Positions 3,936-38,945 of a DNA stretch of 39,454 nt are shown piece after piece. The stretch is from Hyphochytrium catenoides (Eukaryota; Protista; Hyphochytriomycota), in contig FLMG01003824.1 of the NCBI GenBank assembly GCA_900088475.1, positions 1-39,454 on the forward strand, given 5' to 3'. Each line of letters begins with the position of its first letter. The stretch's first letter is position 1. Position numbers and translations under genes: made by a program. The notes below the pieces were generated by a model. The model searched no databases. It worked only from the letters and a program-made list of their open reading frames with translations, and had not been told where the DNA came from.

Positions 3936-4020
3936 TTCCTTCTGCTCACCTGGATGACGTCACAGAGCATGCAGATGAATATTAAGCCCCCGGCTGGGGG
4001 ATCAAACTGGCGTTTGACAT
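3936..4020. repeat. ~85-bp direct repeat, copy 1 (copy 2 at 4424-4505)
   Basis: ttccttctgctcacctggatgacgtcacagagcatgcagatgaatattaagcc matches ttccttctgctcacccggatgacgtgacagagcatgcagatgaaaaataagcc. This copy starts where the gypsy RT breaks off. Confidence 0.9.
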
Positions 4021-4206
4021 TACTAGGTTGGGAGCGCTCCTTGCCGCCTAGCTGGTCAAGCGGGAGGAGGATCTGGCCCGTTAGTGATCGCCGAGGTGTC
4101 CTAACTCTACGACTAACTCACAAGACCTAAGCTAACCAACGGAAACTGAACACTCCTTACCGCCCCGACTACAGCTGAACTACGTACTCACTCTTCTACA
4201 TAGGTT

Positions 4207-4217
4207 TGGCGCAGCGA
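4207..4217 (+). promoter_or_regulatory. Possible retrotransposon primer-binding site (TGGCGCAGCGA) 6 nt after a ...CTACA possible LTR end
   Basis: TGG-initiated 11-mer complementary to a tRNA 3' end ...UCGCUGCGCCA, resembling Ser tRNA acceptor ends. No matching 3' LTR was confirmed. Confidence 0.25.
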
Positions 4218-4240
4218 AGAGAGGGCGGGCGGGCGGTTGA

Positions 4241-4420
4241 CTGTTCCTGCTGCGCCGCACAGGTGCAGTCAGCTGTGCCTCCCCTCTCCGTTGCCGCCGT
4301 GTCTAGATCTGGGCAGGCGGCAGAGGCTGAGGCTGACCGAGAGAATCTGAGACTGAGGCGCGAGGTCAGCCCCATCCTCTAACCGCGCCAGGAAGACCTA
4401 ATATCCCCCCGGCTATTCAA
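4241..4420. repeat. ~180-bp dispersed repeat with hairpin potential, copy 1 (copy 2 at 14592-14771)
   Basis: ctgttcctgctgcgccg...cctctaaccgc.ccaggaa.acctaatatcccccc.gg.tattcaa is shared, and both copies end at the same TATTCAA. Confidence 0.93.
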
Positions 4421-4423
4421 CCT

Positions 4424-4505
4424 TTCCTTCTGCTCACCCGGATGACGTGACAGAGCATGCAGATGAAAAATAAGCCTCTGGCTGGGAGATCAAACGGGCG
4501 CTTGT
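4424..4505. repeat. ~85-bp direct repeat, copy 2, at the 5' edge of the copia gag
   Basis: Direct alignment with 3936-4020. Confidence 0.9.
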
Positions 4506-4507
4506 AA

Positions 4508-7500
4508 TTGTGGAGTCTAGTCCAAGACCATCCAGAGAGTGACCATGCCAAAGCGATAGCCAAACGTACTGCTGTAAACAGCAGTGAGTTGCAACAGAGG
4601 TATCCGCAGGCTTTGTCGCACCTTGCAATCCCGGTGACCAGGACTATATCAATCCCACATGTTCTGGAGGCTGCGTCGGCTGCTGAAGCATGGGACAACC
4701 TCAGAAGAACATTTGATCCCGCGACAGTCTCAAATGTTCGAGATATGAGGAAGCAACTCATCCGGCTGCAGATGAGAGAGGGAGAGTTAGTCCAGTCAGG
4801 CGTACTTTGGTCAGACTGAGACTCTGGAGGCTAAACTTGCCAGCCTGAGGAGGCCTGTAGAGGATGCCGACATGGTAGACTACCTACTGCAGGGGTGATA
4901 CCTAAGCTCCACCACGTCGCTGACTTACTGGAAGCGGACCAGAAACTCACAAAAGAAGAAAAAAGATGACTAGTGCCTTGCTTGGCGCAGAGCATAGAAA
5001 TGCGCTTGCGAGAGGGAAAGCTAGGGAGGGGTTGATAGCGAGGCGGAACAGTCCCTGGCAGCCGCCACTCGTCGCGGGAGGACCAAAAAGAAGCCTCCAC
5101 CAAAGTGGGGAGCCAGCAAGAAGAAGTTTGCCTGTTGGACGTGTGGTATCCCTGGTCACAAACAACCAGACTGCCCGGATTATGAACCCTCAGATGTAGA
5201 CGACAGTGCCAAGGCAGGAAAAAAGAAGGAAAAGGAACGCAGGGGACCGCAGCAAGAAGAAGGTCGACGGTCACGCCAGCATGAAGGTGACAACGATCTT
5301 AACCCAAAGTGATCCCATGTTGTGCAAGGATCAGCGATGGATTCCCGACTTGGGTTGCACAGCCCACACGTCCCATCATGACACGACGGTGTTCAAGAAT
5401 TATCAAAAGGTGTCCGAGGCCGTGAGAGTGAAGGCTGCAGGGGTTGAGGACCTCATGGCAATTGGCAAGGGAGATGTTGAGATGGTGCTGGAGACGGACG
5501 ACGACAGTATTACCCCCTGTACCTTCAAGGATGTTCCATGTGCCTGAACTGCATCTAAACTTGTCTCTGTGAAGAGGGTGGTCGAGAGCAAGTACTACTA
5601 CGTCACCTTCAAAGTGTCTGATGGGGGGAAGATCTACCGGGTCGTCAAAAACGGTCGGCAGGCGCGGCGCCAGCTGCTAGGAGTGACCCAAGAATCTATT
5701 GAGGACCGGCTTTATGTACTCCGAGGGCAAGTTCAAGTAACCAAGACCAAAGGCAGCAGCAAGGAGGCTGCAGCAACCACAACAGCAAATGGCTCCAGCC
5801 TAACCCTTCAAGAAGAGTGGCACGCCGTCTAGGCCACCTCCATCACGAGGCGGTTAAGAAGCTGCTAAGGGACTTCAACATCCCTCTGAAGAAAGTAGTT
5901 AGGCAACCGGGGTGGGGTCATAGGGCCCAGCGACGAGAGCTAAGGACCTCCCTAAATTTGTGCACTCGGACCTGCTGGCCTTTAAGGTCAAGACACTCAA
6001 CGAGGAACGGTACATGCAGAGCTTCATCGACCACCGATCTGGACTCTCTTGGGTCTACCTCCTCAAGCATAAGGGAGAAGCTGGCGCTGCATTTCGTAAA
6101 TCCGGGCCTATGTGGAGAAGCAGACTGGGACGGCTATAAAATGCATCCGTACTGACAATGGTGGAGAGTAAACCCTTCACTGAATTCGAGAACTACCTAG
6201 AGAGCGGTGGGATCGAGCACCAGAAAACTGCAACCAGGACCCTTGAGCAAAATGCTGGGGCGGAGCGCTTTAACAGAACGATCTTAGGGAATGTCCGGTG
6301 CATGCTCAGGCAGGCAAGCAGGACTAGCGGATATGTATTGGGGTGAGGCAGTACGAACAGCTGTCTACCTACGTAACAGGTCGCCCTCCGCAGCACTCGC
6401 GGGAAGGGAAACACCTTATGGCATCTGGCATGGAAAGAAGACGCCAAGTTTGCACCTCATCTGCCCCTTTGGCTGTGAAGCATATGCGTTTAACAAGGAG
6501 CACAAGCGCAAGCTAGAGTCACGAGGGATTCAGAGCATTCTGCTGGGCTGCAGCCCTCCTGTACAGAAGGCGTACCGGCTGTTGGAAGTAATGAACAGGA
6601 GAATCATTATTTCCAAAGATGTCAGTTCAATGAGACCTCATTTCCTTACCTGGAGCAGAAAGGAGTAGAAAGGAACAGACAACCACCGGAGCGAGCTGTC
6701 ATTTAATGAGTGAGCGCGCAACAACACCGGCAGCAGCACAATTGCCGATCAGGCACTGCATACGTCAGACAAGGAGAGCACTGTGAGGCTAGCATTCAGG
6801 AGAAGGAGCCAGACGAAGACACATTTGCTAGTGCAGACTCATCGACTGAAGACTCACACTCAGAGGATTCGCTCTCTGACAAGGAGGAGGCAGACAGTGC
6901 TGACACGGAGGCGAATCTACCCACTGATCATGGAAACACTCCACCGAAGAGACCACCCACCACCCAAGCACAACAGCTAAGAAGGTCTGAGAGACCAAGG
7001 AGGTCCAAAGTACGCTTTGCCATTGAGGAAGAGTCCCTACTCACTACGACGGAGCAGCTGGGAGAGATTGAATATGCCTACTACTCCGGCGGGGTCCGAG
7101 CCAGAAATGAGACCTCTACTTACAAAGAGGCCATCAGATGTACAAAAAGCAGAAAGTGTCAGGCAGCCATGCGTGAAGAATACGATTCTCTGATGTAAAA
7201 TGGTACATGGGAGCTCACTGACCTGCGAGCTGGACGCAAGCCAATCGCCTGCAAATGGCTCTATGTGATCAAGACTGGTGCAGACGGGAAAGTCACTAGA
7301 CATAAGGTACGGCTGGTAGTCAGAGGCTTCGCCAAGTCTTTGGTGTAGACTACTTCGAGACCTTTGCCCCAGTTGCCAAACTCTCCACGGTACGCCTAGC
7401 CCCTAGCTATGACTGCAGTTCAGGACCTCGACATCATCCACCTGGATGTCAAGACAGCCCTTCTCCATGGCCCCATTGAGGGGGAGGTGTACATGCTGCA

Positions 7501-8700
7501 GCCAGAAGGGTTTGCTGCACATGGAAAGGAACACATAGTGTGCAGGCTCAAAAAGCCACTCTGTGGACTGAAGCAGACCCCTAGAGTGTGGAATGAAAGG
7601 CTATCTAGCTTCCTAATCTCTGAGGGGTATTGCTGGAGCCAGGCGGATGACCGCTTGTACCTGAGGAGTGGCGATGAGCTAACACTGGTTTTGGGTATGC
7701 TGATGATCTTCTGGTGATCGGCCACTGTGAAGAGGAGGTCTAAAGGCTTGAACGAGGATTGAATGCAAGGGTTTAAGATGAAAACTCTGGGGGAAGTTGT
7801 TTTCTCCTTGGCAGCAGGGAGACCATTTGTGACCACAACTCCAGACAGATCTGGGTAGGCCAACGCGCCTACATACAGCGAATCCTCGAAAGCTATTGGA
7901 TGGCTGACTGCAACGGCGTGCAGACACCCTGGAGGCCAAGCTCCGCCTGTTGAAGGACCTCGGGCCTCAGCCGAGTCAGAAGGATCAAGCATCATTGCAC
8001 CGGAGTCTTGTGGGATCTTCGATGTATGCAATGATGGCAACAAGGCCGGACATTGAATAATTTGCAGTGGGGATGCTGGGAAGGTTTGTGAGTAACCCCG
8101 GCCAGGGCCACTGGCAAGCAGCAAAGAGAGTCCTGCGCTACCTAAAAGAGACATCTGACCTTGGTATTGTGTTTGGAGGGGGTGACCGATGCAAGGGCTT
8201 GAACAGCCTCCTTGTCTTCGGCTACGCAGATGCGGACTGGGGCAACTCTGTGGATGACTACAAAGTCCACTATGAAATATGCCTTCATCGCTGCAGGAGG
8301 TTGTGTGAGTTGGCAATCTAAGAACCAGAGCTTGGTGGCCCTGTCAAGCACAGAAGAAGCAGCGTATGTTGCACTCTGTGAAGCTAGCAGGGAAGCAGTG
8401 TAGCTCAGGAGACTCTCTCGGGATGTTTTGCCTACAGGTCATGCCTCCAAAGGCAAGCCCACCCTCAATTATGAGCATAACCAATCTGCTTTATGCCTGG
8501 CATCTGAGGAGGTTGCCGGAAGCCATGAGCGCGCAAAGCACTTCTCCATCAAGTACCACTTCACTAGGTAGGAGGTGACCAAGGACAAACTCCTACTGGA
8601 GTACCAACCTACGCACGGAGGAGATGGTCGCAGACACCCTCGCAAAGGCCTTGCCGCGCCCTGCCGTCATCAAGCAGCGGGATGGATTAGGCCTGCCACC
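4508..8700 (+). mobile_element. Pseudogenised Ty1/copia LTR retrotransposon (gag-PR-IN-RT-RNase H)
   Basis: Motifs occur in copia order: gag SAAEAWDNLRRTF..LIRLQMREGE, zinc knuckle CWTCGIPGHKQPDC (~5130), protease WIPDLGCTAH, pre-integrase W(H)RRLGHLH, integrase CIRTDNGGE / QNAGAERFNRTI / YWGEAVRTAVYLRNRSP, RT FETFAPVAK, HLDVKTALLHG, GLKQTPRVWN, and RNase H GYADADWG, WQSKNQSLVALSSTE, EMVADTLAKAL. Many frameshifts and stops. Confidence 0.96.
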
Positions 8701-9790: not shown

Positions 9791-10699
9791 CGTTGTCAGG
9801 AGGGGAGCTATAGCTATTGAGCACAAGGGTGCATATAATGTGCTCTGGAAGGAGGTTAGGTGCATAGGAAGCACTTCCGCTTGATCTACTATCAAGCCAA
9901 AGAAGGGACTTCTACGCTGGTTCCCGTCGTTCAGATTCTGTGTCCTACCCAGCTAGCGGCAGTGGGTCAGCAGCACGACGTTTGTCGCTGGTTCGTAGAA
10001 GTTAGGGGCTAGCGGAAGCAATGTGCTTCTGTAGTAGCGAGGACATGGTTCTCTTACGAGTAGGAGGAAATTATTAGCTTCATGGGCACGAACAGCACGA
10101 TGGATCTAGGAGAACTATCTGTGGGTTTTCGTCCAGCCTGAAGCCCTCTGTAAGTAAGTAAGTACGTAGTTAGGACTTGTCTGAAACAGGCTAAGAATTA
10201 TTGAGTAGTTGTAGAGGAGTAGGGAGGCCTCCTAGAGTCCGCTGAGCCGTAAGTAAAGTATGCTCAAGCGTCCCAAGCTGTCAAGCGGATGAACCCTCCA
10301 AATAAATCGTCAATAGCCAAGCACAGGAACGCAATGAGTATCAAAGGAAGACAGAGGCTAATCAAGCACAAACACACAAAGAAAGTGGGGAGATGAGAAG
10401 GGAGAAAGGGAGACTCTACACAAAAGAACAAAAGGCAGGACAGCAGGTGTCAGGGGGCAAGCAGCAATAGCAGCACAACAGCGGCCAGAAAAGCCAGCAC
10501 ACGCAGCTGCCACGCAGCTGCACAAGCACTCAGGGAGGTGTATCATATCTGAGCAAACAGCAGTAGTACGGCTCCTACCCGTAGTACGACCAATAAAAAG
10601 GAGGTCTTCCCATAACCAAGGCCCATCCACCCCTCAAGCTAGCTCAAAGATCTCTTCCACTTCTCCTCCACAACCAACAGCTTGATACACTCAATGCTT

Positions 10700-10913
10700 G
10701 CTTTCTGGTGACCCTTGTAAGGTTTGCTCTGCTGCTGCTGGAGTCTTGTAAGACGACTTGGCGCACTACAACGTTGTACGCACGTACCTTCACTCTCACT
10801 TTTCAAACCCACTTGCTGAAAAGCCGAGATCGATTTTAGAAGGCTTTCTAATATTAACAACCCAATCTTGACAGATACGAAATTGATGCTGGAAATGGCT
10901 CTCAGAACTCATC
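10700..10913 (+). mobile_element. His-Me nuclease repeat copy D (3' fragment with putative right TIR 10889-10913)
   Basis: 10700-10797 aligns with 11590-11686 (ggagtcttg...tacaacg.tgt.cgcac.tac.ttcactctc). The reverse complement of 10889-10913 matches 12913-12937 at 21/25 nt. Confidence 0.7.
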
Positions 10914-10979
10914 AGGACCAACCTAAGCAAACTTGGATTCCCCCGTGTTTGCCCCCACTTATTACTCTTCGGTAGGGAC

Positions 10980-11688
10980 TGATTGAGATTTCTCCCGTCA
11001 GAAGCCCCAGCTCACTTTTCATTTTCCAACCAGGGCGAAGGATGGAGCCAACGACTCCGCAACAACAAGCCACCCCACCCCACCTACACCTTCTTCCAGC
11101 AGAGAGCGGTCGCTGCGGAGAAGACATCACCAGCAGCTATCTCAAGAAGATGGGCAGGAACGTCCCACGGAGGAGATTACTCCTCTCAAACGAAAGTTGG
11201 TGACATACTTCAGGTGAGGAAGGAAGTCAGCAGGCGCAAGCTCAGATAGCGCATAGATCAGAGAGCGACACCGGATGTTTCCAGCTGCTGGATCCGAAGA
11301 TGAAGGCGAGTCACCCAAATCGTTACACGAAACTAAACCTTAGGAATGCCAGCGATGTCTCTGGGAGGAGATTTGGGGCATCACCTCTCTGTGCTGGCTT
11401 TCAGGGACTTGGCCAAACAAATCTACCCATTGGCGGCATGGCCAACACACATGGTGACACTGGCAGTGAGTTGCTGCCAGGGAGTCGTCTTTGCCAGAGT
11501 GGGCGCTGCTTCATCCCTGATCAGCTCTTTCTAAAGACGATGAGGAGAAAAAAGTGAGGAACCCTTGCAAACATGTCAGCAAGGTACAGTTCCTACTAGG
11601 CCTTATATTACTAAGGTCTGCTCAGCTGTTGGAGTCTTGCACTGCGGCTTAGCGGTACAACGCTGTGCGCACCTACTTTCACTCTCTG
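10980..11688 (+). pseudogene. His-Me finger (His-Cys box, zf-His_Me_endon-like) endonuclease pseudogene, copy A
   Basis: Across frameshifts: SSCWIRR.MKASHPNRYTKLNL..GHHLSVLAFRDLA..SRLCQSGRCFIPDQLFLKTMRRKK(V)RNPC. This fits the CW..GY..H..SHLC..CxNPxHL..E..N..R..C pattern. Confidence 0.75.
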
Positions 11689-12390
11689 AATGGGTAGGAT
11701 GCGGCATGGCGTAGTGGTTGACTCCAGCAGCTGAGCAGACATTAGTGATCTAAGGGCTACCAGGAACCTGTACCTTGCTGGCATGTGTGCAAGGGTTCCT
11801 CACCTTTTTTCTCCCTCATCGTCTCCAGCAAGAGGTAATCAGGGTTGAAACAGCGCCCATTCTGGCGGCTCACTGACAACTCACCGTTCAACGTCACAAT
11901 GTCTCTTGGCCATGCCAACGGCTAAATAAGGCCAAGTCCCTGAAAAGCCAGCACAGAGAGGTGATGGAGGTAGTGATTGCCCCCAATCTCCTCCCCAGAA
12001 GCATCGCGGGTATTGCGGAGGTTTATTTTCGTATAGCCATTTGGATGGCTCGCGGAATCCAACAGCTGGAGATCTCAGGCGTCGCTCCTTCGTCTATGCG
12101 CTGTTTGACCTTGCGCCTGACTTCCTGGAGTAAGTGACCAGCTTTCTCTTGAGAGGAGTTATCTCCTCTATGGGACGTTCTTGACCCTTCTGAGACAGCT
12201 GTTCGTGATATCTTCTCCTCAGCGACCGGGTGCTTCCAGTAGTACAAGGTGCAGATGGGGTGGCTTGCAAGGTCGTTGGCTCCATCTTTTGCCTGGTTGG
12301 AATTTCGGAGTGAGCTAGCTTAAGAGACAGTCGGCCTCTGAGAGAAGTCTCAGCCTGTTATATGTGTATCTCCTCTGACGGCTGGTAATC
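11689..12390 (-). pseudogene. His-Me finger endonuclease pseudogene, copy B (inverted, tail-to-tail with A)
   Basis: Minus strand reads EVRRKVKQRIDEGATPEISSCWIP..HHLSVLA..ELSVSRQNGRCFNPDYLLLETMREK/VRNPCTHASKV..VCSAAGVNH/TPCRIL. Confidence 0.78.
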
Positions 12391-12912
12391 ACCTGATCGC
12401 GCACTGGAGACACGGATCGACCGGTGTATGGGATAGGACCTCTCCTGCTTGAGAGTACTCTCAGGGCGTGTAGTCCCGACCAGAGTCGGCAACGAATGGT
12501 TCTGACGATGGATGGTCTCTTCCTTTCCCTTTCTTCCCTCTTTCTCTTTGCATGGCATTATTAGAATAGCCTGTTGTTGACACTACTTCTCTTGCATGTC
12601 TCTTTTATCTTTGCATTTCTCAGGTAGACTGACTCTCTCGCAAGGGAGACTCCCTCTTACCCTCTATATCTCAGTTAGTAAACTTCTTTCTGAAGTAGAA
12701 GACCCTTTGCTACTTGCGTGTGTTCCCGCGAAGTCTTCCTCTGCGTGGTGCTTGTCTGAACTGGAGGCCTGGCCAGCCAAGTTACAGAGCACCTTCTCGC
12801 TCTCTCGCTCTCTCGATCTGCGTCAGTCTCACATATTACACAGCCCCTACCGGATGAGCAAAAGACTGGAGCTGAAGGGTAAGGGAGGCAAGGCGGAGAA
12901 GCCCTTTTGCTA

Positions 12913-13328
12913 GATTGGTTCTAAAAGCCATTTCCAGGATTGTCGAGATATAGTTACGGCTGAGATTGCCCTCAAGAGGCCGACTATATCTTTGGCCAGC
13001 TCACTTTCTTTAATTTTCCGACTATGACGAAGGAAGGAGCCAACGACTCCGCAACAAGCCGCCCCACCTACACCTTCTTCCAGAAAGCGGTCGCTACGGA
13101 GAAGATATCACCAACAGCTATCTCAAGATGGACGGGAACGTCCCACGGAAGAGATAACCCCTCTCAAGAGAAAGCTGGCGACATATTCTAAGAAGAAGGA
13201 AGTCAGGAGCAAGCTCAGGCAGCGCAGAAGATGAGAGAGGGACAATACCGGAGATTCCCAGCTGCTGGTGGGTCCCAAGAATAAAGGTCAGTAGTCACGC
13301 TAATGGGTACACGAGACTAAATAGCCGC
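12913..13328 (+). pseudogene. His-Me finger endonuclease repeat copy C (5' half with putative left TIR 12913-12937), truncated next to the CRE-like remnant
   Basis: Aligns with A (ggagccaacgactccgcaacaa..cacctacaccttcttccag) and encodes IPSCWWVPRIKVSSHANGYTRLN. Confidence 0.75.
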
Positions 13329-13329
13329 A

Positions 13330-14345
13330 GGCGGGTTGAAAAGAGACTGGGAGGACAAGCCCAAGAGTGTGGGTAAAACAAAACGCTAAAAAACTAATCA
13401 TAGCAGGACGAGTGATACGGTAGCGGGAAGGAGACCCACACCGCCAAGCTTGACGGGAAGAGAAGCCTGATGATCCCATGCAGAGTCAAAAACGAACGCC
13501 GAGAAGTCCTAACCCACAAGACGGCCACGAAACCGCCTTGCCTTCAGATCAAGATCAGGCAGCTGTCCAGCAGGTAGAGCAGGCGGGGGACAAGTGCGGA
13601 GAAGGTGGTTATCTTCTTGACCACACTTAGACAGCCCCTACCCTACACATGGGGAGACGTACTTGGAGGTCTTCAAGCCGATTAAGAAAGGAGGTAATAG
13701 AAAGCAGCCCGAGCTAAGAGTGAAGATGAGAAGGAAGAAGAAGCGAAAGCACGGGAGTCGATAAGGCTCCAGGTAGTTCTAGTCCACAGAGAGAGACACA
13801 TTTAGTCGCAGCGGGGGATTCTTTCAAGGAAGTGAGTCCAGCTCGCCATATATTACTCGCAATTAGCAAAAAAAGTTCCTGTCCAAAAAGGGAGCAATGA
13901 TTGATTAGATTGAGCGGTCAGGAACAGAACCACGCCAGCCTATCAAGGTACCGTCGTCACGATTAGAAGCGTGCAAGAGGAGGTCCGCAGCTTAAGAACC
14001 AAGGGCTGGAGGGGGAGAGGAAATTCAGGCGGGCCCAAAGAAGGATCACCCTGTTGAACCCCAGAAGAGGAGCCAGACAGGTGGAATGGGCCCTGGAAGG
14101 GATGGGATGGCTGGCCGTAACAGAAACTCACCCATGGACGACAGAGACAGGGAAAGTGGAGACGAATCTGAGTGATGATGAGAGTCGATCTGCTGACACA
14201 ATCGAAGGCATTGGTGAAGTCCATTTGAGCATAACAAGGTCTGAATCGTGACCTTGCTCATCAACCACTTGATAGTGCATGGACAAGAGCAAAATCCTTC
14301 CATCTGCAGATGATGAAAGTGCTGGGTGACTTCATTGGCTCTCAT
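13330..14345 (-). mobile_element. CRE-like (early-branching, RLE-type) non-LTR retrotransposon RT remnant
   Basis: DFTNAFDCVSR, SSSGVQQGDPSLGP, DDGTLIG, HLLRTCPP and QASLPVKLGGVGL occur in the expected order. Confidence 0.88.
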
Positions 14346-23741: not shown

Positions 23742-25739
23742 AGCTATGGTAGATAAGTAGGAGCAGTACGAAGTAGAAACTAGCAAGCAGGCAGTGGAAA
23801 TTAGTCAGGATTTGGCTATATCTTTGTGAAGCTAAACACTATATTTCCTGCTTGAAGACCACTCGGTAGACGTACTGCATTGAAGCTGCAAGGAGGCTCT
23901 TCTGACTGTTGCGCTGCCATCTCAGATTAGTTCTCTTAGCAGATTCGTTATCGGTATCTGTCGGCCGTTATCGGGAGCTTATTGCGGCTCCAGCACCAGT
24001 CTGCAGATTCGATCCATGGCTCAGTCTTGGTTAATGCCGAAACTGCTTCACAGTCTACCTGATAATGTACAGGTAGAAGTAGTAACAAGCAAGAGAGATT
24101 GGAACAAGAGGCTGTCCTAAGAACTTGCAAAGAGGAAGTGAGCAGAAAGGGAAAAGAAGGAGAGCGTCCTTGATCAAAGCCATTAGTTGGCGCTTCTAGT
24201 CAGGACTATTCCTTCTGATGAGGACACTCTCAAAAGAGAGGCTGCTGCACCCATACAACGGCCGGTCCTCATCCAGCGCTCGATCAGGTAGTCAGTAGCT
24301 GAGGAAGGCCAAATTTATAGCAGACTGCACTTCGCTAGAGAGAGATTCTGTCAAGAAAGTTCATCTGTAACAGAGGTAATAAGGAGGAGCACAATCTCAA
24401 AGTCATTGCTTCTGAGGATGGTGGGCCTGAGGCCCTGGCCACCCGAAGAGAGATGTTATTTAGTAGCTAACACTTGCCCTCTTGCAGCTCTCTTCTCAGC
24501 GGACAGAAAGAGTCCGCATCTAGCCAACCGCACGGAGCTTTAGGAGGCCCAAGGTGCGCCAATGGAAGGTCGACAACATGTGCTTAACAATGCGGATGGA
24601 GATGAGGCTCCGGCAGCATCTGGACTGCCTACATCTGACTATACATTGTGTTGGCCGTAATGATTCTCATTCGCCCTATACGGTTGCAAGGCCCTGGGAT
24701 GGGACTGCTGGCAGGCAGGGCACATCTTGGGAAGAGCAAAGGGGTTATAGATGATCATCTCAGCATCATTGCCGTGGGGCTGAACAAAGATACCACGGTA
24801 GCTGAGGATCCACAGGAAGGCAGAGCTATCAATCTTTCTCAGTGTTAAATCTCGCCCCCTAGTGGACGGAGGTGGATGATCGGTCAATGACCGCGTAGAT
24901 CGTCTCTCATCAGGCAAGAGCGGATATATGTTTTCGGTCAGCCCGACACACGACAAGCCGTGAATGAATATTCCTCCATATGCCCTCGAGGCAATGCTCT
25001 GGAAGGGTACTCTACCCTTGAGCTCTAAATCTCTCTTGTTACCAGTTCACCCGACGAAGCAATTAGATCGCCCTCCGATAGGATAGCTGCCTACGAGAGC
25101 CTCCCAGATTACCATCGGACGGTAAACTTGCTTATTTGATAGGGAAAACCACCTCGGCAGTTTATGATTACTGTCGGTCCACCCTCGGCTGACTCTGACG
25201 AACCTCTTCCAACACGTGCTGCTTCACATCCTGGCCAAGACGAAAGAGGTTATCTCTTACTGGGTGCGGACATTTGAACCGAAGTAAACAACTCTATAAA
25301 TGGCCTGTGCACGATCAAAGTCGAGCCGCCAAGCTTACTCTACTGCACAGGATGCTTTTGGTGAACAATCTCCTGACACCTGCGAAGATCTGAGCATAAT
25401 TTCCGAAAAAAAGGCTTCAGACGATTGCAGGCGCTGGCCAAAATGTTGAATTTGAAGCTTCCATGCGTCTTGAAAGCGAGAAGCGGCGGAAGGAGAGATC
25501 TTAACTATTCTTCAACATCCAGGCAGCCTTATGCAAAGGTTCCTTTGCTGCTTAGTGGTACCTTTGCAGAGCTTTTGAATGTTCTTAGAATTGCTCTACT
25601 TGGAACGGTAAGACTGCCATTTATTGACTGTGACAATGATAAAAAAGGGAAATCTGAGTGTTGTCATAAACTACGGCTGTGCTTCTCTCTGAGTCAGCTT
25701 TTTGCGCCATCCGCACTCCTGAGGGCCGTTTCTACCATC

Positions 25740-26717
25740 TCACTTTCCCGTCCGTTCAGTACTGTGAGAAATGCAAAGCCCTTTAAGGGCCACTCGCCTT
25801 TCACAACCGGACACAGAGCAGCGTCTGACCGGGGCGCCATGGGCTATGCAAAGGTCCCTTGCCTGAACATGCTTTTGGCAGCCCGCTACAACGCATCTCT
25901 TGACCTTGGCTCCATGAGAAATGCATAACCCTTGGCCTTTAGCGTACTTGGCACAGCCAGCCACGGCACACCTTCGATTCTTAATCTTTGCTCCGTGAGC
26001 AATACACACCCCTTTCGCGTATGCTTTGTTTGCACAACCAGTCGTAGAGCAAACTTTGGTTGGAGCACCATGAGCCTTGCACAGGCCCTTGGACACGACG
26101 TGCTTGTGGCAATTAGGTACCATGCATCTTCTGACCTCCGCTCCGTGTGCTATGCACCGTCCTTGGCCTTTTGCGTACTTGTTGCAACCGACCACAATGC
26201 AACATCGCCAGCTCCGGACGGCATCAAAAAAAGGAGATTTCTCCTCGACGAGGTCCCCCCTTTGGGCCTCTTCTGTGGTCGTAGACTGATGGTGAGTGAG
26301 ACAAAGGCTACCTGCGGAGCAGTTAGCGTGTTTATCTTTGGATTTTCTGCAAATAGGGAAAGAAAAAGTGGCCTTCTTGGAGTTACTGTCCTGTGTCCTG
26401 CGAGTTCTTCGTGCACGCCGCTGCTGGCCAGAGCTTCTTGGAAGGTCGGAGGAGCTGTTGCTGATTGCGGAAGGAGACCACGACGACGAAGAACAAGAAC
26501 TTTGGTCTTCTAAGAAGGTCATTCTTTCTTCCCCCTCATCCGCAACCCTCCCTTCAGAAGAGTTGCTCTCTGCACAATGCAGAAGCGTTCGTGTAGGCGA
26601 TTCAGTGCTCTTTCTCTCTGACTGTCCGGTTCTATTATTGCCTGTCAGGCCTCCAATAGGCGCCTCTTCTAGAGACGACGTTTCTGCTGCTTGCTCATCA
26701 TCTAGCTCGCCCTTCAT
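25740..26717 (-). CDS. Protein with six tandem C-x4-C-x9-C-x2-H(G) repeats (WRKY19-like Cys3His zinc fingers) and a disordered Ser-rich N-terminus; upstream exons possible to ~27311
   Basis: 325-aa open ORF containing CIVVGCNKYAKGQGRCIAHG, CMVPNCHKHVVSKGLCKAHG, CSTTGCANKAYAKGVCIAHG, CAVAGCAKYAKGQGLCISHG, CVVAGCQKHVQARDLCIAHG and CSVSGCERRVALKGLCISH. Confidence 0.85.
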   Translation of the reverse strand: MKGELDDEQAAETSSLEEAPIGGLTGNNRTGQSERKSTESPTRTLLHCAESNSSEGRVADEGEERMTFLEDQSSCSSSSWSPSAISNSSSDLPRSSGQQRRARRTRRTQDSNSKKATFSFPICRKSKDKHANCSAGSLCLTHHQSTTTEEAQRGDLVEEKSPFFDAVRSWRCCIVVGCNKYAKGQGRCIAHGAEVRRCMVPNCHKHVVSKGLCKAHGAPTKVCSTTGCANKAYAKGVCIAHGAKIKNRRCAVAGCAKYAKGQGLCISHGAKVKRCVVAGCQKHVQARDLCIAHGAPVRRCSVSGCERRVALKGLCISHSTERTGK

Positions 26718-37500: not shown

Positions 37501-38613
37501 GCCATCGCTGCCTTCTCAGGAGTCTCGCCTTCGCTAGCATCGTCCGAGCTAGTGGAGACATTTCTTGCCATCAGGTGCCTGCCTGCATTCTGGTCCTCAA
37601 TACGTTCATCTGAACTATTGGAGACGCAGCTCGCAGCGGCTGTTCCAGCAGAGACCAGAGGGATGCCTTAGTTAGAACGGCACAACGCTGTCTATGGAAA
37701 TGACTGTGAAGCTTAAAGGCCTACCGTCAATCTTGCTTTCCACTGCCACGGAGGCCAGTGGTCGCACACTTCCCTTGCACATTTGGCACTTGAGCTTGTG
37801 TGCGTCATTGTGGAACGTGCACACACTGCAAGCCCACTTTCCACTATCAGTCCATGTGCCCCTGAGATCAGAAGAAAACTCGCTCTTTCCAGGGCCTAAA
37901 AGGTTGCAAAAAGGAGAAGATGAACAGTTGGGCCTACATCATGGCAGAAGTCGTCAACGTATCAGCCTTACTGCTTCGCGCGGAGCGCCGTTGTCGGACT
38001 TCCCCGCTGCCTGGAGCCTGGGATAGGCTGGATGGCTGATAAAACTGAGCTTTCGCAGCCTTCTTGGCTGAGACAGACAACTTTTTTTTCAGCATCTTCG
38101 TGGAGAACGCGCATCGTCTAGGAGCTGGAGAGCTCCTCGGCTAGGTTCTGACGCTCTTCCACTGTCAGCACCTAATGACTGTTAGAGCCTTGATCTCATG
38201 ATTATCTGCAGATCTTGCGATCGATTGAGAATGTCTTCAAGGTCTCAGCCTTCCACATCCTCTGCAGGCAAGTAGATGTGCAGAAACTCGAAGAGCGAAA
38301 GGAAACAGAGGCAATGCTGGCGCCTTCTATAGAAGTGACGAGAGAGATGAAGNNNNNNNNNNNNNNNNNNNNNNNNNNNNNNNNNNNNNNNNNNNNNNNN
38401 GAGAGAGAGAGAGAGGAGAAAGGCAGATGGACAAGGAGAGGAGAGAGATGAGGGGAAGAGCAAGACAGCAAGGGAGAGAGAGAAAGAAAAAGAGACACGA
38501 GAGAGAGAGAAAGAGAGCACGAGAGAGAGAGGAAGAGAGCAAGAAAGAGAGAGAGAGTGGAAGGAGAGAGTGAAAGAGAGAAGAGAGAAAGAGTAAGAAA
38601 GAGAGTGTGTGTA

Positions 38614-38645
<32 letters not shown>

Positions 38646-38649
38646 GAGG

Positions 38650-38680
<31 letters not shown>

Positions 38681-38945
38681 GGGAGAGAGAGAGAGAGGGA
38701 GAGAGAGACTTGTTTCGCAAAGTGATTCGCGCCAAAAGTTTTATTGTAGCCGTTAACGGCCCTAATGTGCCAACAAGAAGAGAGCGATCAAAGTCTTCCC
38801 AACTCTTCATGAGCAAGAATTTGAGGGAGACATGCAGTTGTGCTGCATCGACCTGTTGAGAGCTGCTGCAGCTGCTCCGCCACGCATCATCGCCTTGTCC
38901 ACACAGCCATTTTGCTTGACCTCCAGCGACCAGCTCCATCATTAG
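34532..38945 (-). CDS. Multi-exon gene: large disordered acidic/Ser-rich protein with three RanBP2-type (NZF) zinc fingers and a basic C-terminus; 5' end uncertain and may extend past 39454
   Basis: Fingers KWACSVCTFHNDAHKLKCQMC (~37835), GWVCERCVFNN..CEKC and CANCGAENDPSAQLCEGC. Frame-preserving GT-AG introns at 34624-34672, 34783-34842, 34947-35027, 35268-35360, 35901-35962 and 37204-37268. Ends ...KRVGTSRRKS*. Confidence 0.8.
38401..38708. repeat. (GA)n / purine-rich low-complexity tract next to an assembly gap (N 38353-38400), probably intronic
   Basis: Seen directly. Confidence 0.95.

Follow-up and report, generated by a model that had tools for sequence, protein, structure and literature searches.

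His-Cys box nucleases are textbook residents of nuclear ribosomal DNA (rDNA) group I introns, and enzymes of the I-PpoI type are homodimers that recognize near-palindromic sites. In the literature that we searched, the only example of such a nuclease outside an intron is the cargo of the animal transposon KolobokP, and the corresponding Pfam family, PF05551 (zf-His_Me_endon), is hardly discussed elsewhere. KolobokP elements are 4 to 4.7 kb long, encode a DDD/E transposase together with an I-PpoI-related His-Me finger nuclease, and are known from seven animal phyla only; their terminal direct repeats of ~450 or ~660 bp carry short inverted ends of their own (Kojima and Bao 2022; PMC9587614). 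A role of this nuclease in multimer formation has been proposed and is still untested (PMC9587614; PMC13565253), and where a 2026 review turns to transposons that carry a protein-based homing-type nuclease, KolobokP is the sole example given (PMC13565253). Here, we describe a cluster of decayed nuclease genes at positions 10700 to 13331 of a stretch of Hyphochytrium catenoides DNA (GCA_900088475.1, contig FLMG01003824.1, forward strand), which we call the window and which comprises 39,454 nucleotides (nt). The cluster is made up of dead copies of a unit that is restricted to this lineage and once encoded a protein of the I-PpoI Pfam family; the unit has inverted ends, is clustered in both tandem and inverted orientation, and lies in no intron. 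A first-pass annotation of the window had already recognized a His-Me (His-Cys box) nuclease at this locus and had noted that such nucleases travel as KolobokP cargo, which is correct according to PMC9587614.

Repeat finding, MAFFT alignment, and blastn within the window agree on four homologous decayed segments (A to D) that lie side by side and share 72 to 78% identity; they occupy the places assigned to them by the first-pass annotation, with limits refined here. More specifically, blastn identities are 74% over 633 nt for A and B (E 1e-106), 78% over 345 nt for A and C, 73% over 317 nt for B and C, and 76% over 80 nt for A and D, with E-values among the four copies ranging from 1e-106 to 6e-10. 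A fifth copy was sought across the 39-kb window at both the DNA and protein levels, and none was found. Copy D (10700 to 10913, + strand), delimited by blastn to A and by translations, is a 3′ fragment only, in which the tail of the open reading frame (ORF; 10713 to 10868) contains one internal stop. Copy A (10960 to 11690, + strand) retains a nearly full ORF, with an ATG at 11042 and ~6 frameshifts or stops, and it has no recognizable 5′ inverted repeat and is missing its final ~180 nt. Copy B (11708 to 12390, − strand; ATG at 12285 to 12283) is inverted and lies tail-to-tail with A. Its domain region is broken at four places and the sequence upstream of that region at one more, 9 nt are deleted over the catalytic strand, the copy stops short at its 3′ end, and at its 5′ end an unrelated high-copy repeat either interrupts or adjoins it. 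Finally, copy C (12913 to 13331, + strand) consists of the 5′ half only, i.e., the 5′ terminal inverted repeat, a leader of ~95 nt, and the N-terminal 68 codons in frame; its start-codon position reads AAG (13034 to 13036), and it is truncated past the motif SHANGYTRLN. As annotated previously, no single copy offers an informative ORF, the open frame having been lost in all four, and the breaks differ between copies.

In the layout of the cluster, D and A form an apparent head-to-tail junction, A and B lie tail-to-tail, and B and C are head-to-head on either side of a repeat that was inserted later. At the first of these junctions, the decayed 5′ end of A may follow immediately on the 3′ end of D, although the alignment at this point is weak. 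The repeat separating the 5′ ends of B and C (12391 to 12819) was recognized by its word depth, which reached 30 to 190 times the baseline in three DNA runs. We considered this sequence as a possible part of the element and rejected it, because parts of it recur in the window at 24289 to 24051 (−) and 23356 to 23200 (−) without the nuclease. In some other genomic copies of this repeat, the portion corresponding to 12639 to 12697 is replaced by TTAGGGTTAGGGTTAGG, a telomere-type repeat.

Three-frame translations and coordinate mapping of the four fragments yielded a merged ORF of ~240 codons, reproducing the merged peptide reported in the first-pass annotation. Its N-terminal ~75 residues are basic (RSLRRRYHQQLSQ..ERPTEEITPLKRKL.TY) and are followed, in order, by SSCWIP..(K)ASHPNGYTK(I/L)NLRN, HHLSVLAF, PLAWP..VTL, S(R)LCQ(N/S)GRCF(N/I)PD(Y/Q)L.L(E/K)TMR.KKVRNPC.H.SKVQ, and ..VCSA.GV.H, after which D carries on to a TGA stop codon at 10869 to 10871 (+), located by translation and coordinate mapping. 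Two irregularities within this merged frame were examined and set aside. An intron after SKVQ was rejected: B keeps its frame at this point, where its TAG stands opposite TAT in A, and the break in A is a simple 1-nt deletion. Likewise, a frameshift common to A and B at the A-run before VRNPC was rejected: A lacks one G in AGGGAG and B has an extra G in AAGGTG, which makes them independent indels.

The divergence between copies carries the mark of past coding constraint. Ratios of nonsynonymous to synonymous substitution rates (dN/dS; Nei-Gojobori) were 0.30 for A-B over 157 codons, 0.33 for A-C, and 0.22 for B-C, the pairs spanning 70 to 157 codons. In DNA-only alignments, the mismatch rates of A and B at codon positions 1, 2, and 3 were 0.18, 0.10, and 0.28, respectively (p=0.0025), and a codon-position bias was also detected for B-C (p=0.044) and was not significant for A-C; these values are to be read with the caveat that the reading frames were picked partly by peptide similarity. 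Because mismatches favor third codon positions and dN/dS lies at ~0.2 to 0.3, the sequences indicate that the ORF is the remnant of a real protein-coding gene.

We assigned this gene to a family by means of X-joined read-throughs, in which one natural copy is translated with an X at each break. Against PF05551 (profile length 131; gathering score 27 bits), the read-through of B (136 amino acids [aa], 4 X) scored 34.8 bits (E=2.3e-8) in one stretch covering profile positions 2 to 114, and that of A (143 aa, 5 X) scored 29.1 bits (E=1.3e-6) over positions 1 to 115. With both copies above the gathering score, membership of the I-PpoI-type His-Cys box family is established at the level of sequence, in agreement with the assignment made in the first-pass annotation. 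The unbroken pieces are too short for classification, and the only one to match the profile, SHPNGY...HHLSVLAF of B, fell below the cut-off at 20 bits. No further Pfam family was found for the X-joined read-throughs, even at E-values up to 10. Atlas features pointed toward HNH_3/zf-His_Me_endon clusters for the catalytic piece and toward NUMOD4/HNH_3 clusters for the N-terminal piece, which we treat as leads only, and in PHROGs the GRCFNPD core had a weak match (E=0.2) to an HNH family.

Beyond the profile match, the sequences establish no closeness to any particular PF05551 member, the KolobokP nuclease included. PDB sequence searches with the pieces and both X-joined copies gave no match to I-PpoI or any other nuclease, no solved structure had a pairwise match, and an AlphaFold2 single-sequence model of X-joined B had a mean pLDDT of 33.5, too low to be used for judging a beta-beta-alpha-metal fold like that of 1A73. 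Similarly, word-indexed searches of 5.8 billion proteins detected no relatives of X-joined B, of the 68 N-terminal residues of C, or of a stretch of 117 aa in A that contains no stop; exhaustive HMMER of 1.84 billion representatives with a 50-aa B piece returned two spurious repeat proteins only; and metagenome and viral contig scans with X-joined B revealed no relative.

The likeness to I-PpoI and the His-Cys box enzymes of rDNA introns extends to the residue pattern. The Cys/His ligands are similarly arranged (CW..., C..C, RNPC.H, ...C......H), and the spacing S-x, +12, +4 fits S97/H98, H110, and E114, the reference residues (together with N119) being taken from PMC9587614 and placed by the spacing in copy A. 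At the S97 position, A has Ser, and at the position of the catalytic H98 it has Arg (CGT, in AGT CGT), a codon one transition away from CAT; in B both positions were lost in the 9-nt deletion, and copies C and D do not span the H98 site. At the H110 position, A has Gln (CAG) and B has Tyr (TAC); among sense codons, CAC alone lies a single base change from each of them, and the ancestral residue may have been His. Thus, the two histidines that the first-pass annotation had given in brackets, as not seen intact, are indeed absent from the surviving copies. The E114 position is Lys in A and Glu in B, so that S97 and E114, given as conserved in PMC9587614, are each kept in one copy here. At the position of the metal-binding N119, 21 residues after that of H98, both copies have Lys (AAA), in difference to the I-PpoI group, and an Asn four residues further on (VRN) is a candidate substitute. 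Judged by these residues, the extant copies are certainly inactive. Their ancestor was likely an active nuclease, although no copy keeps the catalytic residues intact. A further difference from the I-PpoI group is the extra basic N-terminal region of ~75 residues.

The ORF is apparently framed by inverted repeats. Local alignment identified a 5′ terminal inverted repeat, GTTCTAAAAGCCATTTCCAGGAT, in the 5′ flank of copy C (12918 to 12940, +) and a 3′ terminal inverted repeat, ATGCTGGAAATGGCTCTCAGAAC, in copy D (10886 to 10908, +). The former matches the reverse complement of the latter at 20 of 23 positions, a score reached in only one of 5,000 shuffles and higher than that of all 271 control segments of the window. 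Between the repeats, the start of the ORF is separated from the 5′ one by ~95 nt, and its stop codon, seen in D, from the 3′ one by 15 nt. The overlapping fragments combine into a unit of ~0.87 kb, which leaves space for no more than this one ORF. Target-site duplications are unreadable, because no copy has both ends. For the same reason, the TTAA duplications of Kolobok elements in general and the 5′-RR...YY-3′ termini used as a KolobokP criterion have no intact copy here to be read from; TTAA was not seen beside the 5′ end of C or the 3′ end of D, and both flanks are decayed. Two DNA-pattern matches to the 23-nt terminus elsewhere (L001 and L002) had no other DNA or protein similarity to the element and were taken as chance.

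The surroundings bear out the statement of the first-pass annotation that the nuclease ORF is outside any intron or rDNA. Rfam at gathering thresholds reported no family, rRNA, or group I intron across the whole window, and ARAGORN found no tRNAs in it; because both came back empty, the ORF is placed outside introns and rDNA, unlike those of the I-PpoI group. A permissive Rfam E-value scan of 10000 to 14000 produced a sub-threshold snoRNA match only. Likewise, no linked transposase emerged, again as annotated before: a Pfam scan of 18 of the window's larger ORFs, which was not exhaustive, contained no DNA transposase domain and showed, apart from zinc-finger domains of the host, only the Pol_BBD and SH3_retrovirus domains of a Copia-type retrotransposon.

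Set beside KolobokP, its nearest known counterpart, this locus shares a His-Cys box nuclease gene carried in a nuclear element with inverted ends outside introns, as well as tandem, multimer-like arrays. It differs in the ~0.87-kb size of the unit, which leaves no room for a transposase beside the one ORF, in the lack of terminal direct repeats, the copies themselves and the 23-nt inverted ends being all the repeats that were detected at the unit, and in a probable stramenopile host. With the free-standing homing genes of phages (Seg and Mob; HNH_3/NUMOD4 type), it has in common a stand-alone, intron-less gene and the weak feature and PHROG similarity to HNH; unlike this ORF, the phage genes sit between conserved phage genes without inverted ends, and the ORF has no Pfam match to HNH_3.

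Our preferred reading, which we hold tentatively and which falls somewhat short of probable, is that A to D derive from an extinct family of ~0.87-kb transposons with short inverted repeats, whose only gene encoded the PF05551 nuclease with its presumed beta-beta-alpha-metal domain and which were moved by a transposase acting in trans, with the nuclease as cargo. The mobility, the trans-acting partner, and the role of the nuclease are our inference. Under this reading, the unit would have moved as a short inverted-repeat transposon, its ends being handled by a transposase supplied in trans. The nuclease cargo would have cut at or near the element ends, thereby provoking recombinational repair, and this repair would have built local tandem and inverted multimers, by analogy with what has been proposed for the KolobokP nuclease. 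The four fragments would then stem from diverged lineages, all copies of which later decayed to pseudogenes. A selfish element carrying the nuclease alone, as proposed in the first-pass annotation, is made plausible by the inverted ends and by an ORF that fills the unit; that proposal is qualified by the lack of a complete copy, the low copy number, and the loss of catalytic residues, and a trans-acting transposase or a local cluster origin could also account for the locus.

Several findings weigh against the transposon reading. Neither an autonomous partner nor a transposase was seen in the window ORFs scanned. The inverted repeat is a single pair drawn from two different partial copies (C and D), it is no more than faint at the 5′ ends of A and B, and none of the four copies is complete with both ends. 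The catalytic residues are broken, with Arg at H98 in A, the deletion over this site in B, and Lys at N119 in both. Moreover, the depth over A and B is close to the single-locus baseline, indicating a low copy number at ≥80% likeness, the level at which depth was measured in three DNA runs; family members as diverged as A to D (~25%) are invisible to this test. The roughly equal pairwise divergences (22 to 27%), together with a second locus bearing the A/B junction, are likewise compatible with a gene cluster that was duplicated locally or segmentally.

This second junction was found in a 784-nt contig at half the baseline depth, which is ~82% identical to the 5′ half of B and has the same inverted A/B junction minus 235 nt (window 11625 to 11702 joined to 11938 to 12286). 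Its sequence indicates a second locus or a divergent haplotype, and with it a cluster duplicated as a block. Such segmental duplication is among the arguments for an explanation that dispenses with mobility altogether, namely, that the copies are a lineage-specific host gene cluster, i.e., tandem and inverted paralogues of a domesticated His-Me protein that was once under selection and of which all members then became pseudogenes. Every copy in the window lies within 2.6 kb and the pairwise divergences are similar, the codon-position bias shows a period of selection, and a protein with Arg or Lys at its catalytic positions may have bound DNA without cutting it. What makes a host cluster unlikely, in our judgment, is that the inverted repeat lies exactly outside both ends of the ORF, that no homologue appeared in the protein, metagenome, or viral-contig searches, and that all copies are dead and lie amid transposon debris.

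An equally unlikely explanation accepts the gene as selfish and treats the ends differently. Under this scenario, the unit would be a free-standing nuclear homing-endonuclease gene that spread by cleavage of a target and copying during its repair, without a transposase. The insertion would have split a palindromic target, whose two halves now look like inverted repeats. An ORF that fills the unit, the failure to find a transposase in the ORFs scanned, and membership of the Pfam family of a classic homing enzyme all agree with it, and free-standing homing genes are known in phages (PMC13565253). On the other hand, at 23 to 28 nt the half-sites would be long ones for a homing enzyme, homing does not usually leave three diverged lineages stacked in one place, an empty target site was not found, and the reliance of eukaryotes on end joining is argued to make nuclear homing less adaptive (reviewed in PMC13565253). 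The more general idea that the His-Cys box nuclease was itself the mobility enzyme, whether of a new type of eukaryotic nuclease-only inverted-repeat transposon or of an intron-less nuclear homing gene with a split palindromic target as its ends, appears to us doubtful. Finally, although the KolobokP nuclease gene adjoins a terminal repeat and KolobokP leaves non-autonomous derivatives and multimers (PMC9587614), we consider it rather improbable that internal deletion of a larger autonomous transposon, whether KolobokP-like or other, or of an integrated virus-like element left behind the nuclease gene alone, as the locus has no long terminal direct repeats, no TTAA was seen beside its decayed ends, no transposase remnant was found in the ORFs scanned, and the viral-contig scan revealed no relative, and as KolobokP is known only from seven animal phyla while the host here looks stramenopile.

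If the transposon reading is correct, a nuclease-only unit of ~0.9 kb would show homing enzymes and transposons to be linked in another eukaryotic supergroup as well, and in a far simpler architecture, and it raises the question of whether such a nuclease could by itself cause or promote the spread of a DNA element. The dead and incomplete copies are valuable mainly as a pointer, as intact or more abundant relatives may exist in the same genome. In this respect, contigs ~100 times deeper than baseline contain matches to a 47-nt leader module (12309 to 12355 in B and 12958 to 13005 in C); these contigs have different outer flanks and a similar run up to an ATG (loose end TTTCCATATTCCAACAACCAGGGAATATGA). 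These contigs may represent a more abundant relative or a shared promoter module, and given this depth, a far more abundant relative of the unit may survive in the genome. Separately, a 205-nt contig from an RNA-labeled run with another organism label (X4) is identical, but for one mismatch, to 12814 to 13018, the segment that runs from the 5′ flank of copy C through its inverted repeat into its leader; it could reflect DNA carry-over or mislabeling and is not evidence of transcription.

The remainder of the window contains other mobile and host sequences. An ORF at 13943 to 14224 (−) has reverse-transcriptase-like motifs (FDCVSR... and GVQQGDPSLGP), which suggest a LINE-type fragment just past the truncated end of C; the ORF had no Pfam match. 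The Copia-type domains belong to a decayed retrotransposon with Pol_BBD and SH3_retrovirus at 5206 to 6668 (+), which probably spans ~4000 to 8700, with an RNase H-like tail near 8540 to 8660. The zinc-finger domains include those of an intact 325-aa ORF at 25740 to 26717 (−) with at least five Zf_WRKY19 repeats (E=2.5e-34); because its nearest Atlas clusters are those of diatoms and oomycetes, the host is probably a stramenopile. Toward the end of the window, an assembly gap of 48 N (38353 to 38400) adjoins a long low-complexity tract of the CT/SL type (~38400 to 38750).

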